From: Macrostomum lignano
Taxonomy: Eukaryota
Assembly: GCA_002269645.1 (NCBI GenBank)
Contig: NIVC01001208.1
Location: 137,444 to 201,443 of the forward strand
Length of the DNA: 64,000 nt
Direction of reading: 5' to 3'
Both the position numbers and the translations under genes were made by a program. Shown here one piece after another: positions 7,995-59,170 of the stretch. How positions within the stretch are numbered: the stretch's first letter is position 1; the number at the start of each line of letters is the position of its first letter. Under the pieces are notes generated by a model. The model had not been told where the DNA came from, did no database searches, and worked only from the letters and a program-made list of their open reading frames with translations.

Positions 7995-8088
7995 CGTCTG
8001 TCTGTCTGTCTGTTTGTCTCTGTCTGTCTGTCCTTCTGTCTGTCTGTGTGTGTCTGTCTGTCTGTCTGTCTGTCTGTGTCTGTCTGGC

Positions 8089-8137
<49 letters not shown>

Positions 8138-8350
8138 GTCTGTCTGTCTGTCTGTCTGTCTGGCTGTCTGTCTGGCTGTGTGTCTGTCTTTCTGTCTGTC
8201 TGTCTGTCCGTTTGTTTGTCTCTGTCTTTCTGTCTGTCTGTGTGTGTGTGTGTGTGTCTGTCTGGGTCTGCCTGTCTGTCTGTCTGTCTGTCTGTGTGTG
8301 TGTGTGTGTGTGTCTGTGTGTGTCTGTCTGTCCTTCTGTCTGTCTGTGTG

Positions 8351-8381
<31 letters not shown>

Positions 8382-8498
8382 GTCTGTCTGTCTGTCTGTC
8401 TGTGTCTGTCTGTCTGTCTGTCTGGCTGTCTGTCTGTGTGTCTGTCTGGCTGTCTGTCTGTCTGTGTGTTTGTCTGTCTGTCTGTCTATCTGTCTGTG

Positions 8499-8533
<35 letters not shown>

Positions 8534-8540
8534 GTCTGGC

Positions 8541-8583
<43 letters not shown>

Positions 8584-8750
8584 TTGTCTCTGTCTTTCTG
8601 TCTGTGTGTGTGTGTGTATGTGTGTGTCTGTCTGTCTTCCTGTCTGTCTGTCTGTCTGTCTGTCTGTGTGTGTCTGTCTGTCCGTCTTCCTGTCTGTGTG
8701 TGTCTGTCTGTCTGTCTGTCTGTCTGTGTGTCTGTCTGTCTGTCTGTCTG

Positions 8751-8793
<43 letters not shown>

Positions 8794-8904
8794 GTCTGTC
8801 TGTCTGTCTGTCTGTCTGGCTGTGTCTGTCTGGCTGTCTGTCTGGCTGTGTGTCTGTCGTTCTGTCTGTCTGTCTGTCTGTTTGTTTGTCTCTGTCTTTC
8901 TGTC

Positions 8905-8944
<40 letters not shown>

Positions 8945-8974
8945 TGTCTGGGTCTGCCTGTCTGTCTGTCTGTC

Positions 8975-9010
<36 letters not shown>

Positions 9011-9292
9011 TGTGTGTGTCTGTCTGTCCTTCTGTCTGTCTGTGTGTGTCTGTCTGTCTGTCTGTCTGTCTGTGTGTCTGTCTGTCTGTCTGTCTGTCTG
9101 TCTGGCTGTCTGTCTGGCTGTGTGTCTGTCTTTCTGTCTGTCTGTCTGTCCGTTTGTTTGTCTCTGTCTTTCTGTCTGTCTGTGTGTGTGTGTGTGTGTC
9201 TGTCTGGGTCTGCCTGTCTGTCTGTCTGTCTGTCTGTGTGTGTGTGTGTGTGTGTCTGTGTGTGTCTGTCTGTCCTTCTGTCTGTCTGTGTG

Positions 9293-9323
<31 letters not shown>

Positions 9324-9440
9324 GTCTGTCTGTCTGTCTGTCTGTGTCTGTCTGTCTGTCTGTCTGGCTGTCTGTCTGTGTGTCTGTCTGGCTGTCTGTC
9401 TCTCTGTGTGTTTGTCTGTCTGTCTGTCTATCTGTCTGTG

Positions 9441-9475
<35 letters not shown>

Positions 9476-9482
9476 GTCTGGC

Positions 9483-9533
<51 letters not shown>

Positions 9534-9548
9534 TTGTCTCTGTCTTTC

Positions 9549-9579
<31 letters not shown>

Positions 9580-9702
9580 CTGTCTGTCTTCCTGTCTGTC
9601 TGTCTGTCTGTCTGTCTGTGTGTGTCTGTCTGTCCGTCTTCCTGTCTGTGTGTGTCTGTCTGTCTGTCTGTCTGTCTGTGTGTCTGTCTGTCTGTCTGTC
9701 TG

Positions 9703-9745
<43 letters not shown>

Positions 9746-9856
9746 GTCTGTCTGTCTGTCTGTCTGTCTGGCTGTGTCTGTCTGGCTGTCTGTCTGGCTG
9801 TGTGTCTGTCGTTCTGTCTGTCTGTCTGTCTGTTTGTTTGTCTCTGTCTTTCTGTC

Positions 9857-9906
<50 letters not shown>

Positions 9907-9936
9907 TGTCTGGGTCTGCCTGTCTGTCTGTCTGTC

Positions 9937-9969
<33 letters not shown>

Positions 9970-10064
9970 CTGTGTGTGTCTGTCTGTCCTTCTGTCTGTC
10001 TGTGTGTGTCTGTCTGTCTGTCTGTCTGTCTGTGTGTCTGTCTGTCTCTCTGTCTGTCTGTCTG

Positions 10065-10103
<39 letters not shown>

Positions 10104-10122
10104 GTCTGTCTGTCTGGCTGTG

Positions 10123-10165
<43 letters not shown>

Positions 10166-10245
10166 TTGTCTCTGTCTTTCTGTCTGTCTGTGTGTGTGTG
10201 TGTGTGTCTGTCTGTGTCTGTCCACCTGTCTGTCTGTCTGCTCTA
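7995..10245. repeat. Compound (TCTG)n/(TG)n microsatellite, ~2.25 kb
   Basis: Direct reading; it begins right after the K2P stop codon on the minus strand. Confidence 0.95.
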
Positions 10246-36967: not shown

Positions 36968-37415
36968 TATAGAAGACTCACTCTTTTCTGTGCAGTTTCT
37001 CTTGTGCCCAGCTGCTCCGCCAAGTGCAAGTTGGTTCGGCCTTTTGTATCCATGGTCGCTATTGCGCAACAGTTGCGCAACAGAAGCGCTCTGATTGGCT
37101 AATCTGCAGATCAACTGAATTTTATGCACTTTTGAGTTGGCTATTGTGCTACTTGACAGGAAAAAAAACAGACGACGCAATCTACGCCACGCCCGCGTTG
37201 CTCATCTTAACTGTGGGTGGGGACAATTCGCGTCACAAAGTCCTAGTTTAGTCTGGTGAGGAGAGAGCAGCTGAAAGTTATGAGTAGGGTTGGATTAAAG
37301 CTGCCACCTGTTGAAATGTATTATGACGATGACATGCAAATATCATTGAAAAGCTACCCTGTAACCATTTCAGGTTTTGCTCTGCACCCCATTGACTAAA
37401 ACAGCGCTAACGGAC

Positions 37416-38864
37416 ATGGCTCTTCGCCGCTGTCACCGCCTCTGCAATGTGATGGGCATAGCCAAATACGTTTTTCTTACCTGTGTATCACTAATCACCT
37501 GCGGAGTCATAGTTGGCGGTATCCTAGCTTATTTAATCATTCTGCCGTACTACCGAGAGGCGCGATTCGAGCAGACCAGCTGCGTGTACCTTGGCGAAGA
37601 GATGAAGCGTATTATTGACTGCGAAAGCAAGTGCGCCAAGGATAGAAGCAGCTATCCCTGCTACATGGTCAGGGTCAACATCTCGGGCGTGCCTGAGCAA
37701 GGTGTACTGTTTGAAAATTTTCTCACTTATCTGGAGCAAGATAAGGTAACTTTGTTGAAGAAACTGCACTGTTCAGTTTCTGTTCCTGAAATTGTGAAAC
37801 ATCTAATCTTTGAAAAAATGATATATTCATCAGAGTTGCCTAACGTGTAGGATCCTCTTTTGTTTCTGTATGAACCTTATTTAAAATTAAACAAGTCTCC
37901 GACGAAAAATAAAATACAGGCTAGGTCAGAGAAAAACCTTAAAATCTCTGACCCCCTGTGTAGTGCGTACACTCACGAATGTACATCTATTTAACGCCAA
38001 AGCAAAGCCAATTAACCACCCCCCGGAAATCACTGACGCAGTGACGCTCCATTCTGGGCCAGACCTGAAAACAATTCTTACCCCCCCTCCCTGCTGCGCC
38101 TCCGCCCCCCCCCAATTGAAGAAATGTTTAATGTACATCTAAATATGGGTGGAGAGAAACCCACTAACTCTCGGACCGCATGTGTACACTCACGAATGTA
38201 CATCTAGTCAACGCGATAGAAGTCACTGGCGCTCCAATCTGGGCCAGGCCTGAAAACAATTCTTACCCCCTGCTGCGCCTCCGCCCCCCCCCCCCACGAA
38301 AGTCACTGGCGCTCCAATCTGGGCCAGGCCTGAAAACAATTCTTACCCCCTGCTGCGCCCCGCCCTCAAATTGAACAAATGTTTAATGTACATTTAAATA
38401 TAGGCGGAGAGATCCCAACTTTCTGACGGCATGTGTACACTAACGAATGTACATTTAGAAAAGGGGCAAAAGGCGAAACCAAACCAATTACCCCTGCAAA
38501 CTCTAACCCCCTACGTACACTCGTTCTAGTCTAAAACAATTATAACCCGGCTGCGCCTCCACCACCCTTCCAGACAAACTGCAGCTCGGCGCCCTGCCTA
38601 CCCGAGGCGGTAGAAAACGTGGAAATGACCCGGCGCTACATTAAAACCCTGCGACGTCGCCGCAATTTCACCTGCTACTTTCGCGGCCCAGACTCTCGCC
38701 AGAAGAACTCGGTACTGCTCACTAAGATCTACACAAAAGAGCAGGCTAAGCACTGCGCCATCTGGCCAGCATTTGCCGTCTCAATTGGCGCCATCGTGCT
38801 CATCGGAACTCACTACTGCGCTGGGTGCACCGTGTGGACTCAAGATAAAACTGTTATTGCCTGA
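37416..38864 (+). CDS. BK channel beta-subunit-like (KCNMB/CaKB-like) protein B, ~206 aa
   Basis: Exons 37416..37745 and 38574..38864 (phase 0). Motifs: DCESKC..SSYPCYMVRVN, NCSSAPC, NFTCY, SVLL, HCAIWP, plus two TM segments. Confidence 0.85.
37960..38460. repeat. Two to three degenerate ~200-bp tandem units in the KCNMB-like B intron
   Basis: GTACACTCACGAATGTACATCTA recurs at ~37966, ~38184, ~38434; AAGTCACTGGCGCTCCAATCTGGGCCAGGCCTGAAAACAATTCTTACCCCCTGCTGCGCC is duplicated. Confidence 0.7.
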
Positions 38865-39181
38865 TCGATGCATAGCAGCTTGATCAGACTGATCGACACT
38901 CAATCAATGAACAAGAACAGAAAAAAACAGAAGCACTAGCTATGCATGATGCTGTTGTCATTTTCTCTATTTTCTCGAAAAATTATTTCATACATTTTAC
39001 ATTTTACAGCAAGAAAATTATCGGCTTAAAAGCGCACAAAAATTTGGTTTTCAATAACGAAACGCACCGTCATACTTACATTGATTTAAAGCCTTCTTCT
39101 AAGATATTAAATCAATTTGCTTAAATTCTGATAAAATAGCCAAAACATGATCTCTGTTCCTGACAGTAGTATTATGAGAAT

Positions 39182-41627
39182 TTGACGATCAGACCGACGC
39201 TCGATGCCACCTCGACCAGCCTGTCTATCTGGCGCTGGGCGCCTTCAACGGACGAGGACAGGAGGGCGAGGTCGTCGGCTGAGCCAAGCACGCTCAGGCG
39301 CTTTTCGCCATGGCGGCGACCGATGCGTCTGCGCAGCAGGAAGCCGTCATTAGCCGAGGGGAGTGCGGTCCGAAGCACCCAGTCCAGCAGCAGCACGAAG
39401 AGGAACGGCGCTAGCGTGTCACCCTGCAGAACTCCTGATGAAGTATCGAACAGGTCAGACCGGCCGTCCGCCGTCACCACAGCAGCTCGAGTATTGCAAT
39501 ACAGCGCCATGACAGCGTCGACTAGCTGCTGGGGTACCCGGTAGGCTCGAAGGACAAAGGGAAGTGCGGCTCTCAACACCGAGTCAAACGCCTTTCGAAA
39601 GTCAACGAAGACAATGATCAGCGTAGACTGGTGGATGCGCGCCTCCTCGATGACACGGCGGAGTGCGAGGATTTGTGTCACTGTGGCCGGAATCCGTTCT
39701 GCTCGTACCGCAGGTACGGGTCCAACACCGACTGCAGACGATCAAGCAGCAGCCGGTTGAAGAGCTTCGCGGTGCAGGACATCAGCGAAATCCCGCGGTG
39801 GTCTTCCTTCCGCGTTGTCCCTGCCTTTTTCGGGATCGGCACGATGTGCGCGACGGTCCACTTGGTGGGCGCAGGAGCGCCGGCCAGCACGCAGTTCATG
39901 ACGCCTGTGACCTGGGAGGCCACACAGCGGAGCCGCAGCGCTTCAACCCGGGACTTCGTCGGGGCCCAGCGCCTTGCCACCTGATGTTTTCCGAGCGAAC
40001 AGCACAACGTCCTCCGTGGTGACTGGTCTGTGCAGAAGTCCTCCTCAGCTGGGAGCGGCGTGTCCAGTGGGAGCGCAAAGCTGGCGGGCAGCGGCGACGC
40101 GGGCGCGTTCACGATGCCGGCGAAGAAGTCGCGCAATTCATTCCTGCGCTCCTCCGGGGTGTCGCCGGCCAGGTTCAGCGCCACGCGCTTTTTGCGCCCC
40201 GTCAGAGTCCGGACGGCTGTCCACACTGCGCGGCTCTTCACGTCGGGGCCGGCTGCAGTGATGGACCGAATGGCGTCGTCGACAGCGGCCTGCTGCCGCT
40301 CGTCAAGAAGGCGCTCAAATGCGTCTTCAGCGTCGCCCGTGGGCCGCCGGTTTCTGCGGAGTCGCTCGATGTTGAGCCGCGCCGGCGGCCTGCCTGATGG
40401 TCGGGTCGCTCTGCCAGACAGGCAGCGATTTCTGGGCTGGGCGCATCAGCGGGACCGTCTGCTCTGCAGCGGCTCTAACGGCGGTGCTGATGTTGGAATA
40501 CTCCACCTCGCGCTGGTATCCAAGCGCGCCGACAAAGGCACCCGCGAATTGATGCTTCACGCGGGTGTCCAACAGTGCGCGATAGTAGCGCCGTGGCCGC
40601 TGCTTTGGCGGTCGGTAGAGCTGGTCGCGGAGCCGCAAGTCGCAGATCAGGAGTCAGTGGTCTGACCGGAGAGCCAGCGGAGCCATGGTGTCGCAGTTGG
40701 TGACGCGGCGGCGCTCGCGAGTGCGAACCAGCGCATGATCGAGTTGCGCCAGTCTCCTCGTGGCATTCCGCCCGCGTGCGTTCCGCCGCCTTCTCTTGCA
40801 GCCCGCAAAGGTGACCAGGCGGGCAGGGGGCTTGCGGAACTGGGTGTTCGTGGACACCAGATCCAGCCGGTCAAGCAGGTCCTCCAGCACATCGGTATTG
40901 GCGTCCTCCAGCGCAACACGCACAGGTGCACAGGTGCTGACTGTGCCGGCCGACATCCCAGCGGACCTGACGTGCCGCGGCGCAGACTGGCAGACGACCA
41001 AGCTCGCACGCTGCCAGCGGTTCACCTACCTCTGCGGTCTGGTGCCTCACGTGGAAGAGGACCTCCGGCGGCGCAGGGGACTTGCCTGGGCGGCCTTTCG
41101 TTCGATCCGAGCCGTCCTCCAGTCTGAAGCGCTGCCCGACCGCCAGAGGGCTCGGCTGTGGCAGGCGGTGGTCGAAACGTCCTTCTCTACAACGCCGAGA
41201 CGTGGACGCTGACGGCTACCCTAGAGCGGCAGCTGAACTCGGCGCATTCAGGGCTGCTCCGTACGGCCTTTCGAGCTGACGAGAGCGTCGGGACCGAGGC
41301 TCTGTACGATCGGGCCAAGCTGCAGCGCCCGTCCACCATCCTGCGCCGGTGGCGACTTCAACTGGCGGGCCACGTGATCCGGGCCGAGGGCTACTGCCCC
41401 CAACCTGTTCAGGACGTCCTGCTGCTCACCTTGCAGGGTCCGTTCAGGCGGGTCAGGCCCGAACCCGTCGATACGTGGACTGCCTGCTGTGCGACCCTGG
41501 GGCATCCGACACTGCCAACGGAGCGGCCGACTTCGTTCGCTCCCAGGCTCTGCGGCGCGCCATCTGACGCGCCCTGCCCTAACTGTGACTTTGCATGCGG
41601 GGTTGCGTATTTTGTTGTTGTTGTTGT
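39182..41627. mobile_element. RTE-clade non-LTR retrotransposon, 5'-truncated with inverted 5' segment, decayed
   Basis: Minus-strand 40928..39182 encodes mid-EN through RT (frameshifted; YADD mutated to SADD). Plus-strand ~40929..41627 encodes the remaining C-terminus (RRRRGLAWAAF, LLYNAETWTLT) and ends in GCGTATT(TTG)n. Confidence 0.88.
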
Positions 41628-42363
41628 TTTTGAGCAATTATTGCAATAATCAACCTTTTTATAACAAAACGAGAGAAGCATGTAGGCAAATAACTGAGAG
41701 TGTATTTTACACAAAAATAAATTAAAGTGTCTTGACAGCATTAAATTCCATAATAAACCAATATGAATAGAGTGCAAAGGGCTGAAAATGATCTGAAAAT
41801 GTTGAGACGCGTAGCTGCCTGAGCAGCCAATTAATATAAATTACCAGTTTTAATTTTACTAAAGAATCCGAGCATTCATTTCAAGACAATGCCAATCATA
41901 TTCAACAATATTTCTACTCTTGTCTATGGTCAAAACAGTCTATGGCACAGGCACGACACAGCATTGAATTTAAGACACAGAGCAGTCAAATTCAGACAAG
42001 TGCCGCCAATGGAGCTGGAGAGTCCTCCAGACGGATACCATCTACAGAATTGGAGTTCCCATGGTGCTGCAGAGAATCGCGGAGTCAGGCGTGGATGTCA
42101 TCCCGGTTGTCAAGAGTGCACCCCGGTTTGCTCACGCACTGCGCTTCCTGACCAGCTGCTTGGCCCATGAAAATATCTGATTGAGCACACATATGTGGCC
42201 TGACAGTTTAGTCACAGTCGCTATAAAATATGTGCATCACAAAATGCCAATTCACTTTATCACTTGTTCGACTTCTGCGTCACAAATTACGCATTTTTGT
42301 CTAAAGGCTCCGAGTTTTAATGTCTGAACCATACATCTTATATACATATGATCTATGGTCTGA

Positions 42364-45300
42364 TCTGGCAGGACCAAGCGATGGCAGCGGAGCGCCCGTC
42401 GGCGTGTTGAGCGCCGGCGTGAGCGGAACCGACGAGGCCGGCTGCGTGGCGCCGCCCGTCGAGCTGCCGCGCGGGTCCACTCGGATCCTCCGGGTGGCGC
42501 CGGGGACCGTGAGGCTCAACTGCATCGAGCCCCAGCCGTACCACAGGGCATGCTTCGGGTCGGGACGCTGAACTGCCGCACTCTCAAGGCTGCTTGGCGT
42601 AGAGGGGTGCTAGCGAAGCTGGCGTACGACCTGAGCTGCGACATCATCTCGCTGCAGGAGGTGCCTATCAAGGCCGACCCGGGACTTCATTGTGAGGACT
42701 TGGGCGCCGGGTGGACCCTCTACTATACTTCTGCGGACCAGCGAGGCCGTGGAGGAGTTGGAGCGCTGATCGGGCCGAGGCTGCAGCAGAGCTGTCGCTG
42801 CGTCTCCCTGTCCCCCCGGTTGCTTCGGATCGACGTCCGGCTACGCGGTCGGAATGCTCGCCTGTTCTGCGCGTACGCGCCCCCTGCCACACGCCCTGAC
42901 GAGGCTCAAGAGTTTTTCGAGCAGCTCTCAGCGCAGGTAGAGGCGACGGCGCAGCGTGACACAGCGGTCGCCCTCGGAGACCTGAACGCAGTCCTGCGTA
43001 GGTCCGAGAGGTCGCTGTTCGTGACGCCACGCGGGAACAACAACACCGAGGCACTGGAGGACTTCCTGGAGAGGCAGGACATGGTGTCGGCCAACACCCG
43101 CTTCCGCAAGCCACTGAGCGGTCTCGCAACCTTCGTGGGCTGCAAGCGGAGGCGACGGAACGCGCGTGGCAGGAACGCAACCCGGAGACAAGCACAGCTC
43201 GACCACGTGCTCGTGCGTTTCCGTGAGCGTCGTCGCGCCGTCAACTGCCGCACCATCACGCCGCTGGCTCTGCGGTCCGATCACCGGCTCCTCATCTGCG
43301 ACCTCAACCTTCGCGATCCGCTCTACCGTCCGCCGAAGCGGCCACCGCGGCGCTACTACCGCGCGCTTAGAGCCACCGATACGCAGCGTCGCTTTGCTAG
43401 CGCCTTTAACACCGCGCTGGGCGACAAGCGTGGAAGTGCCGAGTATGCGATAGTGTGCGCTGCAGTCAGAACCGCCGCGGAGCAAGCAGTCCCGATGATG
43501 CAACCGGCTCAACGTGGGCAGCCGGTCTGGCAGGACGACCCTGCGATTCAGGCAGCGAGGGAAGATCTGGAGAAGCTCCGCCTGAGCAGGCGACCAACCC
43601 GCGAGGCAGAGGCAGCTCTGGCAGCTGTCTACCTGCAGCGCCAACAAGCGGCTGTCGATGACGCCATTCAGGCTGTCTATGCCGCTGGGCCCGATGCCAG
43701 AGGGCGCGTGGCCTGGTCCGCCATCAACGCTCTGACGGGACGAAAGCGGCGAAATCCGCTGAACCTGGCTGGTGACACTCCGGACGAGCGTAGGAACGAG
43801 CTGCGCGAGTTCTTCGCCGCCATCGTCAACGCGCCGCCACCCCCGCTGCCAGACAGTCTGACGCTGCCGCCGGAGACGCCGTTGCCGGCAGAGGAGAGTT
43901 TCAGCGTAGCCCCAGTCAACGCAGCCGACGTTGTCAAGCTCGCCCAGCAGTCACCGGGCGGGAAAGCGCTGGGTCTGGACGAGGTGCCCATCGAGGCGAT
44001 GCGCATCCCCTGTGTGGCCGCTGAGGTCGCCAGAGTGATGAACCGCGTGCTCTTCGGTGAGGCGGCGCCCAACGAATGGACCACGGCGCACATCGTCGCT
44101 GTTCCAAAGAAGCCGGGCACCACTAGGCTTGAAGACCATCGAGGCATCTGCCTTCAGTCCTGTGCAGCGAAGCTGTTCAACCGGATGCTGCTTTCGCGGT
44201 TGCAGCCCGTGCTGGATCCGTACCTGCGCCCAGAGCAGAACGGGTTCCGGCCCCATCGCGGCACAGTGGCGCAGATCCTGGCTCTTCGCCGAGTCATCGA
44301 GGAGGCGCGGATTCGTCAGTCGATACTGATTTTAATCTTTATTGATTTCAAGAAGGCATTCGACTCGGTTGTCAGAGCCGTGCTTCCAATGGTGCTCCGC
44401 GCGTACAACGTGCCTGAGCAGCTGATCTCCGCCGTCATGGCGATGTACCGTGATACGACAGCTGCTGTGACAACACTGGACGGCCTATCGGACTCCTTTG
44501 AGACATCCTCCGGAGTGCTTCAGGGAGATACGCTGGCGCCGTTTCTGTTCGTCCTGGTGCTTGACTGGGTGCTGCGGACTGCTCTTCCTACCGACGACGA
44601 CGGTTTTCTGCTGCAGCGACGCGTGGGTCAACGTCAACCGGAGAAGCGGCTCAGCGTGCTTGGCTACGCCGACGACCTCGCCCTGCTGTCCTCGACCGTC
44701 GAGGGCGCCCAACGGCAGCTGGACAGGCTGGTTGCCGTTGCGGCGAGTGTCGGCCTGGTGGTCAACACGCAGAAGACCGTTGTGCTCTGCGTGCCGGACG
44801 ACATCGAGGCTGCAATATTTTGCCGAGGCGCTGACGGGCAGGCGACCGAACTCCCGCGATGTCAGCAGTTCATCTACCTCGGCGGTCTGGTTCCAGACGC
44901 TCGCGAGGACCTGCGACGCCGCCGCGGGCTTGCCTGGGCTGCCTTTCGTTCTGTGAGGGCAGTCCTGCAGTCCGAGGCCCTACCGGACCGCCAGAGGGCG
45001 GCGCTGTTCCAGGCGGTAATCGAGACCGTCCTGCTGTACAACGCCGAGACCTGGACGCTGACGGACTCACTCGAACAGCAAGTCGATGCGGCGCACGCTG
45101 GTCTGCTGCGCGCCGCCTTCAACATCGGCGTCGAGCGAGTCACCAACGCGGCACTCTATCGCCGCGCTGGCCTGCCACGTCCAAGTGATCTACTGCGCCG
45201 TCGGCGACTCCAGCTCGCAGGCCATCTCATCCGCGCCGAGTCGTACTGCCCACAGCCGGTGCAGGAGGTGCTGCTGCTCACGCTGCAGGCACCCTACCGG

Positions 45301-45462
45301 CGAGGTCAAGCGCGAACTCGGCGTTATGTCGACTGTCTGCTGGCTGACGCCGGCGCCCCGGACACTGCCGGTGGCGCGGCCTTTGTTCGCGCCCAAGCCA
45401 TGAAGCGCGCCCTGTGACGCTGACTTTTACCATCATGACAGCGTATTTTGTTGTTGTTGTTG
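42364..45462 (+). mobile_element. RTE-clade non-LTR retrotransposon, young copy
   Basis: 10-bp TSD TATGGTCTGA at 42354-42363 and 45463-45472, (TTG)n tail, single EN-RT ORF and no C-terminal zinc knuckle. Confidence 0.92.
42550..45417 (+). CDS. Retrotransposon apurinic-like endonuclease / reverse transcriptase polyprotein (955 aa)
   Basis: EN motifs GTLNCRTL, LQE, AYAP, GDLNA, LDHVL, SDH; RT motifs RGICL, EQNGFRP, FIDFKKAFDSV, GVLQGDTLAPFLF, YADD. No stops or frameshifts. Confidence 0.93.
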   Translation: MLRVGTLNCRTLKAAWRRGVLAKLAYDLSCDIISLQEVPIKADPGLHCEDLGAGWTLYYTSADQRGRGGVGALIGPRLQQSCRCVSLSPRLLRIDVRLRGRNARLFCAYAPPATRPDEAQEFFEQLSAQVEATAQRDTAVALGDLNAVLRRSERSLFVTPRGNNNTEALEDFLERQDMVSANTRFRKPLSGLATFVGCKRRRRNARGRNATRRQAQLDHVLVRFRERRRAVNCRTITPLALRSDHRLLICDLNLRDPLYRPPKRPPRRYYRALRATDTQRRFASAFNTALGDKRGSAEYAIVCAAVRTAAEQAVPMMQPAQRGQPVWQDDPAIQAAREDLEKLRLSRRPTREAEAALAAVYLQRQQAAVDDAIQAVYAAGPDARGRVAWSAINALTGRKRRNPLNLAGDTPDERRNELREFFAAIVNAPPPPLPDSLTLPPETPLPAEESFSVAPVNAADVVKLAQQSPGGKALGLDEVPIEAMRIPCVAAEVARVMNRVLFGEAAPNEWTTAHIVAVPKKPGTTRLEDHRGICLQSCAAKLFNRMLLSRLQPVLDPYLRPEQNGFRPHRGTVAQILALRRVIEEARIRQSILILIFIDFKKAFDSVVRAVLPMVLRAYNVPEQLISAVMAMYRDTTAAVTTLDGLSDSFETSSGVLQGDTLAPFLFVLVLDWVLRTALPTDDDGFLLQRRVGQRQPEKRLSVLGYADDLALLSSTVEGAQRQLDRLVAVAASVGLVVNTQKTVVLCVPDDIEAAIFCRGADGQATELPRCQQFIYLGGLVPDAREDLRRRRGLAWAAFRSVRAVLQSEALPDRQRAALFQAVIETVLLYNAETWTLTDSLEQQVDAAHAGLLRAAFNIGVERVTNAALYRRAGLPRPSDLLRRRRLQLAGHLIRAESYCPQPVQEVLLLTLQAPYRRGQARTRRYVDCLLADAGAPDTAGGAAFVRAQAMKRAL

Positions 45463-46289: not shown

Positions 46290-47289
46290 TCAGGCAATAA
46301 CAGTTTTATCCTTAGTCCAAACGGTGCACCCAGCGCAGTAGTGAGTTCCGATGAGCACGATGGCGCCAATTGAGACAGCAAATGCTGGCCAGATGGCGCA
46401 GTGCTTAGCCTGCTCTTTTGTGTAGATCTTAGTGAGCAGCACCGATCTCTTGGGGTCAGTGTTGTCGTCACCTCGATAATAGCAGGTGAAGTTTCTTCTA
46501 TGCCTCAGGGTGCGAATGTAGCGCTGGGTCATCTCTACGTTCTCCGTTGGCTCTGGCAGACAGGGCGAGGAACTGCAGCCCTCCTGATTGGGGCGGAGTT
46601 GAGGGGTAGGAAAATTCAAACGACCTGAATGTACATTTAGGGGTAGAGGGAGGCCAGAAGTGTACAGTAAGGGTTTGAAATAGCTCATATGTACAGCGAA
46701 AGGCAGAGATCGAGAGACCGATGATGCGCAGTGAAGTTTGGAAAGGGAATGTATGTACATTTGGAAAGAATGATGATGTACAGTGAAGGGCAGAAGGGAA
46801 TGTACATAGATAAAGGGCAGAGAGACGCACCGTAATGTGCTCATTGAAGAGGGTGTTTCTGTTCATTCGGAGGAAGGTTTTTAGAAAGATAGTGACCTGA
46901 GTATGTACAACAGTTTGGCTGAAATTATTCGTTTGTACACACACCTCGTACACGTCGGAAAACGTCAAGTAGTTCTCAAACAGAGTTCCAGCTGTTGACA
47001 GACCAGACACGTTGACCCGAACAACGTAGCATGGGAATCTGCACTTCTCCTTCTTGCACAAGTAGCCATAGCTTTCCCGTTGGTTGCGCATGCAATAGTG
47101 CAAATCTTCGCCAAGATATTCGCAGCTGGTCGGTTGAAATTGCGACTCGCGATAGTACGGCAATATGATGAGATAGGCAAGGATGCTGGACACTATTAAA
47201 CCGCAGGCGATCAACGATACGCAGGTGAGGAATACAATCTTTGCCAAGCCGATGACGTTGCAAAGTTTGTGGCATCTGCGTAAAGCCAT
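46290..47289 (-). CDS. BK channel beta-subunit-like (KCNMB/CaKB-like) protein C, ~212 aa; close paralogue of B
   Basis: Exons 47289..46945 and 46583..46290 (phase 0). Same MALRRCH start, FPCYVVRVN, CSSSPC, NFTCY, and a C-terminus nearly identical to gene B. Confidence 0.85.
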
Positions 47290-50821: not shown

Positions 50822-51098
50822 TCAGGACTCCTCTTGCAGGAAATTGCTCGGCACGAGACCCTCGGCACCATTTCGTTCTAACCGGCCCATTAGAAAGCCG
50901 TCGTCGTCCATTGGTCCCAGTGCGATGATCACGTCGCCAGCGACAAAGCTGAGCTCCATATCGGAGTCAACATTGGGGCTAAGCTCCTTGGGATCGTAGT
51001 CGTATAAAGCTACAAGTCGGCGAAGCGGCGTTGCACCATTTGCTGCTGACGAGGACGGTTGCTGCTGTTGCTGCTGATGGAGTTGCTGCTGCTGCTGC

Positions 51099-51133
<35 letters not shown>

Positions 51134-54100
51134 TTGTTGCGACAGAAGCAGATCCAGTTGGCTCGGATCGTCAATTTGTCCAACAGGAACTTCGTTCACC
51201 ATATTATAGGGGATCAGACCCGTGCGACCGTTGCATTCGCCGTGGTAAAATCCGTCTTCATCTCGGTCGCCCCACACCTTCATCAGCTGACCTTCCTGCG
51301 GTGGGGAAAGGAAATGGAAGAAAAAAATTGAGGAAAATCTCACATTGATCACCCCCCTGAGTCACTGCCATTCCCTCCTTGATCCTCCACTGAGTCACCG
51401 CCATTCCCTCCTTGATCCTCCACTGAGTCACCGCCATTCCCTCCTTGATCCTCCACTGAGTCACCGCCATTCCCTCCTTGATCCTCCACTGAGTCACCGC
51501 CATTCCCTCCTTGATCCTCCGCTGAGTCACCGCCATTCCCTCCTTGATCCCGACACCCACAGCCCTTGAGCACACCCCAGCACAGCGAATTCAACCAACC
51601 TTAAACGGCAACTCCTCTTGAATGGCATCCGGGTTCGGGCTCATTGTGGCGGGATCATAGTCGAATAGGGCAACAAAAATCCTGGATATCCCGGATGGAG
51701 CAGCTCGCTGTTGCTGCTGCGGTTGCTGCTGCTGTTGCATATGCGGCTGCTGCTGCGGCTGCTCAGGCTCCGGCATTTCAAATGACGACTCCTGCTGCTG
51801 ACTGGGATGCCGCCTTTGCCGGCCTGCTCGATCCCTGCTCCCAGCTTGATGATGATGGTGCTGCTGCTGCTGCTGCTGCTGAGGCGGCGCCGGCGGAGGC
51901 GGAGGCGGCGGCGAGTCAGACCGGTGGCCACTTTGTCGGCGACTTCGCGATCCTCCGCCTCCGCCGCCACCGCCGCCGCCGCCGCCTGCCGCCGCCGATG
52001 ACTGCCTGGCCTGATGCCGGCCGTGATGGTACGGCTCGCCTCGCCTGCCACCGTAGTGCCGGTCCCGCTGCTGCTGGTAGCGGTCCCGGTCCCGATCCCG
52101 ATCCCGGTCCCGATCCCGGTCCCGATCCCGGTCCCGATCCCGGTCCCGATCCCGATCCCAGCCGGAGCCGCGACCGCCGCGTCTGCCGCTGTCGTAGGGA
52201 TGCGTGACGTCATCGCTGATGATCTCGTCCTCCTCGGGCATGTACTCCTCTTCGGCGTCGGAATAGGGCAGGTCCTCGTTGGTGACGTCTGGAGGGTTGG
52301 CAGTCAGTTCTATGCTTGAGCGATTTCCGATGCATATCGTTGCAATAAGCTTAGTGAAATAAGACAACTGGCACTCTGATCCTGGCTTCTGTCATATGAC
52401 TCCATGTCCCTGTCATATGACTCCATGTCCCTGTCATATGACTCCATGTCCCTGTCATATGACTCCATGTCCCTGTCATTTGACTCCATGTCCCTGTCAT
52501 ATGACTCCATGTCCCTGTCATATGACTCCATGTCCCTGTCATTTGACTCCATGTCCCTGTCATTTGACTCCATGTCCCTGTCATTTGACTCCATGTCCCT
52601 GTCATTTGACTCCATGTCCCTGTCATATGACTCCATGTCCCTGTCATATGACTCCATGTCCCTGTCATTTGACTCCATGTCCCTGTCATATGACTTCATA
52701 TGATCTCCTTAATCCCTGTCACTCTCATCTCACTAATCCCTTACACTCTGATCTCCTTAATCCTTGTCACTTTCATCTCACTAATCCCTGTCACTCTCAT
52801 CTCACTAATCCCTGTCACACTCATCTCACTAATCCCTGTCACACTGATCTCACTAATCCCTGTCACTCTGATCTCACTAATTCCTGTCACTCCGATCTCC
52901 TTAATCCCTGTCACTCTGTTCTCACTAATCCCTGTCACTCTGATCTCACTAATCCCTGTCACTCTGATCTCCCTAATCCCTGTCACTCTGATCTCACTAA
53001 TCGCTGTCACACTGATCTCCCTAATCCCTGTCACACTGATCTCCCTAATCCCTGTCACTCTGATCTCACTAATCCCTGTCACACTGATCTCCCTAATCCC
53101 TGTCACTCTGACTCCCTAATCCCTGTCACTCTGATCTCCCTAATCCCTATCACTCTGATCTCCCTAATCCCTGCCACTCTGATCTCACTAATCCCTGTCA
53201 CTCTGATCTCCCTAATCCCTGTCACACTGATCTCCCTAATCCCTGTCACTCTGATCTCCCTAATCCCTGTCACTCTGATCTCCCTAATCCCTGTCACTCT
53301 GACTCCCTAATCCCTGTCACTCTGATCTCCCTAATCCCTGTCACTCTGACTCCCTAATCCCTGTCACTCTGACTCCCTAATCCCTGTCACTCTGATCTCC
53401 TTAATCCCTGTCACTCTGATCTCACTAATCCCTGTCACTCTGATCTCCCTAATCCCTGTCACTCTGATCTCCCTAATCCCTGTCACTCTGATCTCACTAA
53501 TCCCTGTCACTCTGATCTCACTAATCCCTGTCACTCTGATCTCCCTAATCCCTGTCACTCTGACTCCCTAATCCCTGTCAGTCTGACTCCCTAATCCCTG
53601 TCACTCTGTACCTCTGTCCCTGTACCCGCCCTGTCACTCTGTCCCTGTACCCGCCCGAAAGACAAGAGAAAGAAAGCAAGAACTCACGAATTTCAGGTAC
53701 AGAAACATTCTTTGACAGCCGTTTGTGACCTTGTCTGTAGGCTCTGTAATCTTCTGTAGGCGATTTGCCAACCTGGAATAAAAAAAAACAATTTCATATA
53801 ATATCAAATAAATGAAATGAAATGAAATAACTAAATTAAACAGGACAAGAAAAGTAAATCACTGAACAACACCAAGTAGAAAAACGAATTATAAGAATAA
53901 AAATGACTACAAGCCAACCAACGCCACACTGAAGCCGTCACCATGATAGAAAATTTATTTATCAAGTGCCATAAAACAGGTTCCTTGCCACCTCAACACG
54001 AAAGCTCCACCTCAGCTGGAGCCTTCGCCTCCTCCGGCGAGGTTCTTCGGGTCCAGCTTCTTGAACATGCTCGCCGTGCCCTCGCCGAACGCTTCAAATC

Positions 54101-57100
54101 TCTTCTTGGTGTCCCCACCGAAGGCGTCGAACTTTTTCTTAGTATCCTCGTTGAACGCTGCGAATTTCTTTTTATTTTCCTCGTTGAAGGCTTCGAAATT
54201 TTTTCGATTCTCCTCGTTCGCTTCGCGGATCTTTTCGCCCGTCTCATCGGCGATTTCCTCCACTTTTTCTTGGAATTCGTGGAAGCCTTTCTTTAGCCGG
54301 CCTAAGAAGCTCGAGTCCTCGGGATCGTTGGGATCGCCTTCGGCACCTTCAACACCTTCGGCACCTTCAGCACCTTCGGCACCTTCAGCGCCTTCAGCAG
54401 CCGCAGCTTCAGCAGCCGCAGCTTCAGCAGCCGCAGCTTCAGCAGCCGCAGCTTCAGCAGCCGCAGCTTCAGCAGCCGCAGCTTCAGCAGCCGCAGCTTC
54501 AGCAGCCGCAGCTTCAGCGGCCGCAGCTTCAGCAGCCACAGCTTCAGCAGCCGCAGCTTCAGCGGCCGCAGCTTCAGCAGCCACGGCAGCCTCCTCTTCA
54601 GGCGTTGGCAGGGGTTCACCCCTAGGGCCCCGCTGCCTACCCTCGGCCGCTTCGTCGACTGTCCGACCAAACTCGTCCAACAGTTCCCCGCCGGGTCCTC
54701 GGACAACCTGTCCGGTGGATTTGTCTTCGAGCACGCCGAACTCGTTGACCCGCCAGCCGCACTCGGAGGCCAGCAGATGACCGCTCGCCGGGTCGCGAGG
54801 CGCGCCGCACACCGGGCGACACCGAGCGTCGAAGTAGCGACCCTGGGCGTCTCTCAACGGCGCCCCGGTTGAGGCGTCGACCAGCAGGCCGAATTCGTTC
54901 TCGCGTCTTTCTGCCGAGTCAATAACGGCTTGACTGTCGGCGTCAACAAGCTGCTGCTCGTCGGCCAGACAGACTTTCCGGCAAGCCAGCGGCCGACCTC
55001 CGGCGTCGAGCAGCTCATCGTTTGGCCCAAGCACGGGCTGCCCGGTGTCCGAGCTGGTCAGCACTCCGAGCTCGTTCGGCTCGGCCGGCGACACCAGACT
55101 GCCGTCCGGGCGGCGGACTCCGTGCACCGGACGACAATCGGAGTCGAAAAACTCGCCGGACGGACCTCGGACTGGCCGGCCGGACTCGTCCAGCAGGACG
55201 CCATTGTCGTTGACGCCGCCAGTTGGCAGCGGCGTGCCAGTCGACGTGTTCAACAGTCGGCCAGTGGACGCATCAAGCCGGGCCCGGCGACAATCGATTG
55301 GCCGGCCGGACGGGTCGAGCAGCTGGCCGTCCGGCCCCGGCTCGCTCAGCACGCCGTAGTAGTTCGGCTGCTGGGCCTCGTCGTCGACCAGCTGGCCGTT
55401 CGGCAGCCGCCGGCCGTAAACGACGGCGCCGTCGGGAGGGCCATAAAATTCTCCGTTTAGTCCGCGAAGCGGCAGCCCGCGCGAGTCGGCCAGCACGTTG
55501 AACTCGTTGGCCACGGCGTCGGCCACTTCGTCCGGCGAGTCAACACGACGACAGGCGATTTCGGCTGCCGTTGCGTCCAATAGTTCGCGTCCGGTCGGCC
55601 CGGACAGTGGCCGGTTGTCTGTCCCGGACACTAACACGCCGAAGTAGTTGAGCTTTGGAGGCGGGTCGTCTGGCTTGCACGCCAGCAGACGGCCATCGTC
55701 GGGATGTCGGAGGCCGCCGAGAGCGGGCCGGCCGTCGGCACCAAAGAACTCGCCGCGGCTGCCTCGCAGCGGCACGGAGCCGACAGTCAGGATGCCGTGT
55801 GAGTTCGCCGCGGCCTCGGGAAACGCGTCCAACGGAGCAGCACCGTCCGGGACTGGCCGGCAGGCGATCGGCCGACCGTCCGAGTCGATTAGAGTGCCGT
55901 CTGGTCGGGTGAGAGCCAGGCCGGTGTCCAGATTAGCCAGGACGCCGAACCAGTTGACGGCGGGCGGCGGGTCGCCCAGCAGCTCGCCGTCGGGGCCGCG
56001 CGGCCCGTAGACCGGCTGGCCGTTGGAGGAGAAAAACTCGCCAGACTGGCCTCGGATCGGGACGCCGTTTTCGTCGATTAGCACGCCGTTAGCGTTGACG
56101 CTTGTAGCGTCGCCGAAGGTCGTAGAATTATTAAATCCGTTAGACTCCGGTACAAGACGGCCGTCCGGGGTTCGAGTCGCGATTCGACAAAGTATGGGAG
56201 CGCCGTCTGGCGGAGATCGGAATTCGCCGCTCGGAGTTCGCAGCGGCTGACCGGTTGAGGGATCAACCAGGATGCCGAATTCGTTGGTTTGGGCCTGACA
56301 CAAGGGGCGCGCATGCGGTAGTGGTGGTGGTGGTGGAAGGGTGCTGGTTTAATAGTGCAAGCTGTGCTTTGATTGACAGGCACGGAATAACGATGCTTCG
56401 CATATTTTTATGTGCAAAGGAGGATAAAAAGTTTACAGGGCAGGGATATAGGACAGGGAAACTATGGGTAGGAGTTGGGGTGGGTGTTTTATACACCCAG
56501 AGGAGGCTATAGTGTACATTAGGGCAGGAAAACTAAGGGTAGGAGTTGGGGTGGGTGTTTTATTCACCCAGAGGAGGCTATAGTGTACATTAGGGCAGGA
56601 AAACTAAGGGTAGGAGTTGGGGTGGGTGTTTTATTCACCCAGAGGAGGCTATAGTGTACATTAGGGCAGGCAAACTAAGGGTAGGAGTTTGGGTGGGTGT
56701 TTTATTCACCCAGAGGAGGCTATAGTGTACATTAGGGCAGGCAAACTAAAGGTAGGAGTTGGGGTGGGTGTTTTATACACCCAGAGGAGGCTACAGTGTA
56801 TATTAGGGCAGGAACAGCGAAGCTAGGAGTTGGGGTGGGTGTTTAATACACTCAGAGGGAGGCTACAGAGTAAATTGGGGCAGGAAAATTGAGGGTAGAA
56901 GTTGGGGTGGGTGTTTTTTACACCCAGAGGAGGCTACAGTGTACATTAGGGCAGGAAAACTGAGGGTAGGAGTTGGCTGGGTGTCTTATAGAACCTGAGG
57001 AAGTTTTACCTACATGTAATAAGTAACGATATTGGCTAAACTCTAAAGAGTTAGCAGGTTAGTATATATACATAAAATGTTACTTATAGAAAACGTTTAA

Positions 57101-59120
57101 ATAGCACAATCTACAACAAAATAAACGAGAGTAAGGTGATATCTTTTGTAAAGTTAAGACACAATCTATACAACATCAAAAGGCTACCACAGACACGTGA
57201 GAAAGGAAAAATCACTACGGATTCTAAGAAAGCTAAAATTGCTGCCAAATTGGTCTAGGCGTTACCCTCGGATTGCGCGAAGCGGACAACAGGTGCTGCC
57301 TGCGCAATCGATGGAATTTCGATGGACTAACGCTGCGACTTCGAATCATTCGGTGGTCCATCAGGGCTGAGGTGTTCGAGGCGGCGGCGGCGGCGGCAGC
57401 TCCTCGCCTACTGGAGCGATGATGCTGGGAATGAGGCTGGCGCAGGCTGCCATGCTGAGGCCAGTCATCCTGCTGCTGCACCAGCTGCTGATGATGAGGC
57501 GGCAGCTGCCAGTCATCAAAGGAGGCCTGCATCTGCAGCTGCCTGTAACCGCCGCCGCCGCCAACAGGGTTGGCATTGTCGTACATGGAGGCGGGACCTG
57601 CAACGCCGTCGTTGGGATGACGAAGCAGGCCGCCCTGCTGCTGCTGCTGATGGTGATAAGCTTGATTATAACCGGCATGAACACCTGTTGGCGACCCGGT
57701 TAGATGAGGCGGCATACCAGCGGTTCTACTGAACCTGGACGACGGGCCAAGATTCAAAGGCCTACCAGACGTGGAAAGTCTTTGTTGTTGCTGCTGCTGT
57801 TGTTGCAGGAGCAGAAGTTGCTGCTGTTGCTGCTTTCCGAAAGCCAGATGACGCTGCTGTTTTTTTTGTTTAAAACAACGGCATTTGTTTGGCGTTGTAG
57901 GATTTGAGGTTTTTGGGATTTGGGGATTTAAAGGGAACAGGGTGGGTGAGAAAAAGAATTATTTTTATCCCTTTAGAAGCTCTTGTAAAATAAAAAGTAA
58001 AAGTAGTTTCAGTTCAAAGGAAGCAAAGTCGCATATCGCCCATAAACCATAGGAGACCTATAGTTGCAAGATTACGAGTATTAGGATTAAGAATCTCTGT
58101 GAATTCCAACATGCCGATAAAGTTACGAGTAATAAATAATTATGAATTAGCCTAAAAAAGCAAATTTTCTAAAATAAACGATTTGTTATGTATGATGCGT
58201 GATTGCGGCACGATGGTTTTAAATAAAATTGACTTTCGATACATATCGGTACAACGAGAAAACTCTTTTTTTCGATGGTTAAGTTTTAAAAAATGCAATA
58301 ATGACTTAGAATCAAGGCAATAGAAATTCTTTAATTTCGATACAAATTAAGTCATTTATAAACAATCCTTTCTCCGATACATACCAGGAAGTTTGGCAAT
58401 TCCTGAAAACTGTTCTTTCGATACATATCGGAAAGTGTGGGAAATTCTTGAAAACTGTTCTTTCGACACATATCGGAAAGTGTGGGAAATTCTTGAAAAC
58501 TGCTCTTTCGATACATATCGGAAAGTGTGGGAAATTCTTATAAACTGCTTTTTCGATACATATTGGAAAGCGTTGAAATTTTCGAAAACTGCTGTTTCGA
58601 TACATATCGGACAGTATGGAAGTTCTTGAAAAACTGTTTTTTTCGATACATATCGGTAGCAAAAATAAACTTACATCCTCTGGCCTAGGCAAATCGATAG
58701 ACGAATTAGCGGCAGACAGAGTCAGCGAGCACGGCGGATCCGAGTCTAAACTCTCCACAGTCTGACCATTGTGAGTACCGACTGTGCGCACGGTCAGGAA
58801 GGCGGTGTGAGGCGGCAGGGAGTTCTGGGCGAGCAGGCAGTGATCTGAGTACGCGTCCAAGCACTCCGTGACCCGGTGCCTGCCGTCAGCGTACACTGCG
58901 TAGCCGGTGACCCGAACACCGTTGGACACGCCGTCGGAGTTGGCAACGGTGACCGGTAGCCAGGTGACTAGCAGGGAATGGTCCTGAGGACCGGGTTCGA
59001 TTTGAACGTCCAGGGGAGCGTCGGGCAGGCCGCCGGGCGTGGTTCGAAACTCCAAGGTGGCGGTGAGGAGAGGCACGGAGGTGCCCGTAGTTTTCGGAGG
59101 CCTGGCCCGCACGCACACCT

Positions 59121-59170
<50 letters not shown>

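Follow-up and report, generated by a model that had tools for sequence, protein, structure and literature searches.

A hairpin-repeat terminal exon inside the RIM-BP gene of Macrostomum lignano: candidate alternative isoform or spliced-leader-dependent nested gene

The C-terminal SH3 domains of RIM-BP position calcium channels and the vesicle-release machinery at the active zone; to our knowledge, there is no precedent for a RIM-BP C-terminus that lacks SH3-II and SH3-III and carries a new module. Two further kinds of described protein bear on the locus reported here. The choline-binding or cell-wall, glucan-binding and clostridial CROP repeats are hairpins of the pattern aromatic-aromatic-(F/L)-D-x-x-G-x-hydrophobic-x-x-G arranged in extended arrays, and an 11-residue amphipathic architecture is that of the reversible lipid-surface helices in synuclein, perilipins and apolipoproteins. 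We analyzed a 64,000-nucleotide stretch of the flatworm Macrostomum lignano (the window; assembly GCA_002269645.1, contig NIVC01001208.1, positions 137,444 to 201,443 of the forward strand) and studied a minus-strand exon at 54012-56294, which lies in an intron of the RIM-BP gene and encodes eleven repeats, a predicted helical spacer and a tail of 11-residue repeats. All coordinates count from the first nucleotide of the window. A preliminary description of the window, made from the letters alone, had proposed that this exon replaces the two C-terminal SH3 domains in an alternative RIM-BP isoform.

The minus-strand frame is open from 56348 to 54015 and encodes 760 amino acids from the acceptor at 56294. 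The stop-to-stop frame of 778 codons was compared with 500 dinucleotide shuffles, in which the mean was 269 and the maximum 705 codons. GC content at codon positions 1, 2 and 3 was 0.74/0.53/0.74, similar to that of the neighboring RIM-BP exons. All eleven NxxGVL-type motifs of the preliminary description were found in this one frame, each initiating a repeat of ~49 amino acids (NxxG[VIL]L), whereas the chance expectation for the expression N..[GN][VIL]L is ~0.09 in 560 residues of the region's own composition. The exon and its repeats are laid out as follows.

54012..56294, minus strand: candidate 3'-terminal coding exon, 760 codons plus stop (open reading frame (ORF) length against shuffles, codon-position GC)
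54615..56291, minus strand: eleven ~49-aa hairpin-rich repeats, arranged as ~98-aa AB double units (alignment, profile, periodicity)
56285, 56096, 55955, 55805, 55649, 55508, 55364, 55211, 55076, 54899 and 54746, minus strand: first codons of the eleven NxxGVL-type starts
56291-56142, 56102-55962, 55961-55812, 55811-55662, 55655-55515 and 55514-55371, minus strand: repeat units 1-6
55370-55221, 55217-55083, 55082-54933, 54905-54756 and 54752-54615, minus strand: repeat units 7-11

When the units were aligned over ~49 columns, N and L were invariant and two G nearly so, giving the consensus xxNxFGVLxDxxxGxPLRGPxGExxDxxGRPxxxRxRxPxGxL. The profile of the unit matched none of the other ORFs of the window. 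The repeats had been described as diverged at the DNA level and held by coding constraint, and our measurements confirm both statements. The mean nucleotide identity among units was 0.50, and Tandem Repeats Finder did not detect the array. Meanwhile, the proportion of synonymous differences (pS) exceeded that of non-synonymous differences (pN) in 52 of 55 unit pairs, conserved G, P, R and L columns used 3-4 synonymous codons, and no frameshift was present across the eleven old repeats. We conclude that this is a genuine and long-maintained protein-coding 3'-terminal exon.

The alternation of two repeat types, written as (AB)5A in the preliminary description, is genuine yet soft. Units of the same parity were 40% identical and units of opposite parity 34% (permutation p=0.011), the residue autocorrelation of the ORF was strongest at lags 95-110, and 16 invariant columns were common to the five AB double units. 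Therefore, the (AB)5A description is borne out, with unit 1 as a hybrid that is nearer to the B units yet has the A-type Cys-Arg. The ~560-aa module of short predicted beta-hairpins has a hierarchy in which 7-8-residue hairpins build ~15-residue GxxGEff-DxDGrPv modules, these build the ~49-aa units, and the units pair into ~98-aa AB units. The 15-residue module, which recurs in proteins matched by the unit profile, speaks for this order as well. The AB double units probably fold as compact domains. AlphaFold2 predicted the unit at 55961-55656 as a pack of short hairpins with a predicted local distance difference test score (pLDDT) of 87.3 and a predicted template modeling score of 0.77, a confidence that rests on a 5-row alignment of the internal (paralogous) repeats. 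The full-length single-sequence model (pLDDT 49) was too weak to be used for the repeats.

We next compare this domain with known families. Searches of Pfam, NCBIfam and PDB sequences with the ORF and with the AB units gave no match for the repeat domain, and a Foldseek search of PDB and BFVD with the high-confidence AB model gave no significant match (best E=1.8, template modeling (TM) score about 0.2). Word-indexed homolog searches with the repeat region, an exact-protein look-up of the exon product in protein collections and a metagenome scan were likewise without a match. A HMMER scan of 1.84 billion representative proteins with the unit profile found no ortholog and no match below 1e-30. 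It returned 75 proteins of a generic hairpin-repeat type, from bacteria, protists and a snail, which were unrelated and uncharacterised and had only the core module G-P-x-G-E-L-L-G-P-D-G-x-P-L in common with the unit, usually in strict 15-residue arrays; none of the 75 had the NxxGVL periodicity or the tail. These results are in line with the earlier statement that the domain is unrecognised, and we consider it very probable that this is a real exon with an unrecognised domain. The AB unit may be a new fold.

Among the proteins returned, the closest in motif were those with GPNGELLGPDGxPL 15-residue repeats (P0001, P0007, P0010, P0012 and P0016; best E=1.8e-26). They share with the exon the core G-P-x-G-E-hydrophobic-hydrophobic followed by x-x-D-G-x-P-hydrophobic, which corresponds to columns ~13-40 of the 49-aa unit. 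However, these proteins, none of them characterised, are strict 15-residue tandem arrays with DSP phosphatase or EF-hand domains, and they have neither the NxFGVL start and Cys-Arg nor the higher-order 49/98-residue arrangement and tail of the exon. In the ORF, a strict 15-residue period was not seen; lags 7, 8 and 15 were weak (z about 1.8-2.4) and lags 95-110 dominant. The likeness may be convergent. The preliminary description had loosely likened the hairpin pattern to DUF3659 (PF12396), and here the resemblance in motif class stood, as both have hairpins of the class G-x-hydrophobic-hydrophobic-D-x-x-G and two proteins retrieved by the unit profile (P0004 and P0017) match DUF3659 above threshold. 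Membership in the family did not stand. The DUF3659 model gave no match to the whole ORF or to any AB unit even at E<=10, and the two also differ in period, in conserved residues and in higher-order unit; therefore, the resemblance is one of motif class. Of the cell-wall, glucan-binding and CROP hairpin solenoids, which resemble the exon in hairpin pattern and extended arrays, dextransucrase (5ngy) and TcdB (7n9r) appeared low in the Foldseek list and were insignificant (E about 4-5, TM 0.15-0.18). These solenoids are extracellular and bacterial, and the exon ORF had no Pfam CW_binding match.

Two candidate origins were rejected. Horizontal transfer is ruled out by the host-like codon-position GC, which argues against a recent foreign origin, and by the finding of no bacterial protein with the same architecture. 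An origin from a transposable element is ruled out since the ORF has no transposable-element Pfam domain and no terminal inverted or flanking direct repeats surround it.

Downstream of the repeats, the exon encodes two further segments, which would be the second and third modules of the product: a helical spacer of ~70 residues and a class-A-like amphipathic helix of ~88 residues composed of eight 11-mers.

54337..54602, minus strand: (EAAAA)n then (EGA)n spacer, residues 565-633, predicted as one long alpha-helix (tandem repeats, structure prediction)
54045..54308, minus strand: tail of eight 11-residue repeats (KKKFxAFNEDT type), predicted amphipathic helix at residues 663-744, pLDDT 73-80

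In the spacer DNA, 12.7 copies of a 15-bp tandem unit (96% matches) precede an array of 9-bp units. The coding (EAAAA)n microsatellite at 54392-54582, with copies 96% identical, is far younger than the upstream repeats and is therefore likely to be length-polymorphic between individuals. The 11-mers occupy the last ~88 residues (…KNFEAFNEENK KKFAAFNEDTK KKFDAFGGDTK KRFEAFGEGTA…) with a DNA period of 33 bp. The hydrophobic moment of the tail peaked at 1.06 at 98.2 degrees, the 11/3 angle, compared with 0.28+-0.14 in shuffles (z about 5.5), and the helix places Lys beside a narrow Phe/aliphatic stripe with an acidic opposite face. The tail shares the 11-residue periodicity and an amphipathic moment at about 98-100 degrees with the lipid-surface helices of the alpha-synuclein, perilipin, exchangeable apolipoprotein and group 3 LEA type; it nevertheless had no match to the Synuclein, Perilipin, Apolipoprotein or LEA_4 Pfam families at E<=10. 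Its only near-match in Pfam was the phasin PhaP_Bmeg (E=0.096, below threshold), and a word-indexed homolog search with the tail returned no match.

The host gene lies on the same strand and had been named RIM-BP in the preliminary description. This identity is secured by Pfam matches to Ig_RIMBP2 (PF25523, E=5e-30) and SH3_2/SH3_9 (E about 1e-17) and by an exon map made by tblastn, with boundaries read directly from the sequence. The gene encodes SH3-I, three FN3/Ig_RIMBP2 domains, a low-complexity linker and SH3-II/III, which is the domain order of the RIM-BP/RIMBP2/TSPOAP1 family; the closest database RIM-BP homolog is from M. lignano (57% identity). None of the five homolog sequences that we read has the repeats of the exon. 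In the list below and hereafter, a slash marks the splice junction.

~63319-63236, minus strand: RIM-BP SH3-I (Pfam, tblastn)
60938-60495, minus strand: RIM-BP FN3-1 (Pfam, tblastn)
59614-59429, minus strand: RIM-BP FN3-2 (Pfam, tblastn)
58675..59121, minus strand: third FN3/Ig_RIMBP2 exon (PF25523), donor GAT/gtaagt after 58675, phase 0
57266..57856, minus strand: Q-rich linker exon, both ends phase 0, donor AGG/gtaacg after 57266 (sequence read)
53688..53772, minus strand: next canonical RIM-BP exon, small, with strong acceptor (tttttttttattccag/G, phase 0) and donor TTC/gtgagt, phase 1
from 52309, minus strand: RIM-BP exon leading into SH3-II
50831..51692, minus strand: SH3-II and SH3-III coding exons, SH3-III ending near 50831 (Pfam, tblastn), which would be lost in the alternative-last-exon isoform

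The phase-1 donor of the small exon at 53772-53688 fits the acceptor at 52309. The canonical path 57266>53772>52309 is phase-consistent; therefore, the repeat ORF lies within a real intron of 3.5 kb, between the linker exon that ends at 57266 and the exon that starts at 53772. The introns of the gene are dense in minisatellites, at 56449-57001 (71 bp x7.8), 52701-53608 (24 bp x38), 52389-52699 (21 bp x14.8), 58375-58656 (45 bp x6.3) and 51345-51550 (33 bp x6.2), several of which give long spurious ORFs on both strands. The linker exon before SH3-II (51591-52309, minus strand) contains a (DR)12 dipeptide run and poly-Gly, poly-Pro and poly-Gln tracts.

The exon was also said to have an acceptor in phase with the upstream RIM-BP donor, a stop codon and an AATAAA signal of its own. 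All three were located.

56295..56296, minus strand: acceptor AG (ccccttgtgtcag/GCC), exon start at 56294, phase 0 (sequence read directly)
54012..54014, minus strand: stop codon TGA
53954..53959, minus strand: AATAAA poly(A) signal ~55 nt past the stop, then a GT-rich stretch

The acceptor tgtcag/G at 56294 has no in-frame competitor from the upstream stop codon to the first repeat, and it is in phase with both upstream RIM-BP donors, 57266 and 58675; the acceptor and the 57266 donor are both phase 0. A second AATAAA (54171-54176, minus strand) lies within the coding tail ~160 nt ahead of the stop, and its use would give a non-stop transcript. The first in-frame ATG of the exon occurs only at residue ~742 of 760. 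Within the 2.3-kb exon, no GT[GA]AG donor and no donor scoring at least 5 of 7 consensus positions was found; the best-looking donor-like site, agg/GTAGGC at 54640, is in phase 1 and would shift the frame. An own first exon inside the intron was rejected, as the 971 bp upstream of the acceptor (56295-57265) contained poor donors only and no credible mini-exon with an ATG and a donor. With no usable ATG and no usable donor, the exon can therefore be expressed only through splicing at 56294 and polyadenylation after 53959.

The exon has the anatomy of an alternative last exon, i.e., an in-phase acceptor, its own stop and its own poly(A) signal without a downstream donor. The RIM-BP isoform put forward in the preliminary description is thus a plausible reading of the sequence, to which we give somewhat less than an even chance. 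During RIM-BP transcription, the phase-0 donor at 57266 would meet the acceptor at 56294 before the canonical acceptor at 53772. The product would keep SH3-I, the three FN3 domains and the linker, and would continue into the hairpin repeats, the helical spacer and the amphipathic tail in place of SH3-II/III. It would lose the binding sites for RIM and CaV channels and gain a rod- or platform-like repeat array, together with a reversible lipid-surface anchor of the synuclein, perilipin or apolipoprotein type, e.g., for vesicles or the presynaptic membrane.

Several points weigh against this isoform. The agreement in phase is a 1-in-3 chance event, and alternative last exons seldom bring in a novel module as large as 760 aa. 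The annotated M. lignano RIM-BP fragments (P0076 and P0086) are without such repeats. The RIM-BP loci of Spirometra (L001) and Dicrocoelium (L002) were repeat-free over 10-13 kb upstream of SH3-II, a span that partly covers the orthologous intron and does not reach FN3-3. In addition, the lipid binding predicted for the tail derives from its periodicity, and the paralogous alignment behind the AB model limits what its confidence can carry. We regard as unlikely the most complete form of the reading, in which a RIM-BP isoform would swap SH3-II/III for five-and-a-half copies of a hitherto unseen ~98-aa beta-hairpin domain, a rigid single-helix spacer and a synuclein-like 11-mer helix gripping vesicle or plasma-membrane lipid.

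The strongest alternative is an independent nested gene that would be expressed by spliced-leader (SL) trans-splicing at 56294, the 3'-terminal AUG of the SL serving as the start codon (ATG/GCC CAA ACC). It was not among the alternatives of the preliminary description, and it agrees with the sequence no less well than the isoform; we consider it a tentative but serious possibility. The outron would come from its own intronic promoter or from the RIM-BP pre-mRNA, and the encoded protein, 761 aa long, free in the cytosol and beginning M-AQTNEFGIL, would have the repeats, the spacer and the amphipathic tail in common with the isoform. The SL of M. lignano ends in ...TTGCATG, and ~30% of its genes are trans-spliced (PMC8629364). 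According to PMC12582326, which cites Cheng et al. 2006 on this point, all reported flatworm SLs have a 3' ATG that is able to initiate. The exon itself would suit such a leader, as it offers neither a usable ATG nor a credible first exon, its phase-0 acceptor stands three residues ahead of the first repeat, and its second codon would be GCC (Ala), a favorable +4 G. The acceptor TGTCAG is one position off the M. lignano trans-acceptor motif [T/C]TNCAG and also fits the cis motif CAG. On the other side, the exon is nested on the same strand downstream of a cis donor that is functional and in phase, which points to cis-splicing; where a cis donor precedes an acceptor, cis- and not trans-splicing is the expectation (Conrad et al. 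1993, as cited in PMC8629364). Obligatory use of an SL AUG is the rarer case, no SL RNA gene was found within the window, and host transcripts would in any case be cut short by the strong poly(A) site on their strand. The sequence is compatible with both the RIM-BP isoform and a separate nested gene and singles out neither; cis-splicing from the RIM-BP donor at 57266 (or 58675) is slightly favored, given the functional cis donor ahead of the acceptor on the same pre-mRNA and a junction that keeps the frame.

All explanations other than the isoform and the trans-spliced gene are, even taken together, unlikely. Under the first of these, the frame would be unexpressed, either a relic without function or open by chance in GC-rich DNA. 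In its favor, GC makes up 65% of the local sequence, shuffled open frames reach 705 codons, and no homolog of the product was found anywhere. However, the 778 codons surpass all 500 shuffles, units only ~50% identical in DNA hold their residues through synonymous codons, the codon-position GC is that of host exons, and the eleven repeats are free of frameshifts, so that we consider a relic or chance frame improbable. Another option, listed in the preliminary description, is a nested gene spliced into 56294 from a conventional first exon that lies elsewhere, either upstream of 57856 or at a greater distance; such a first exon would supply the upstream ATG that the repeat exon requires. This option is still less probable; 56295-57265 holds no ATG with a phase-0 donor of the GT[GA]AG type, and a more distant first exon must skip one or more in-phase same-strand RIM-BP exons. 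Finally, an internal cassette exon, in which a weak internal donor would join part of the array to 53772 and place repeats between FN3 and SH3-II, was judged very improbable: two phase-0 GT sites are present at 54974 (aaa/GTCTGT) and 54812 (ccg/GTGTGC), but both score 4 of 7 without GTRAG, the best-looking site at 54640 shifts the frame, and the conserved tail, stop and AATAAA would be left unused.

Other features of the window lie beyond the RIM-BP gene. Mammalian RIM-BP homologs recruit BK channels. Just past the RIM-BP 3' end, two ORFs resembling BK-channel beta subunits flank a retrotransposon in opposite orientation; the first (37377-37850, plus strand) matched Pfam CaKB above the cutoff (E=1.8e-6, 28.2 bits), and its paralog (46498-47289, minus strand) gave CaKB E=0.0036, below the cutoff. 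The retrotransposon is an intact non-LTR (long terminal repeat) element with a 955-aa ORF (42550-45417, plus strand; Exo_endo_phos and reverse transcriptase, 65% GC), and a fragmented older copy lies at 39172-41650. The GC-rich block at 38-46 kb is due to this element and its degraded copy. A 2.2-kb (GTCT)n microsatellite of ~577 copies with an AT skew of -0.99 occupies 7996-10240.

The exon at 56294-54012 exemplifies exons whose start codon has to be supplied by splicing and which thereby escape ORF-based annotation. It defines a repeat domain without family assignment, whose confident predicted structure has no structural match. It is also a clean test case for an obligatory spliced-leader AUG start codon. 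If the RIM-BP isoform and its lipid-binding tail are borne out, an active-zone scaffold would hold its partners protein-to-lipid rather than protein-to-protein, which would be a new wiring of the scaffold.

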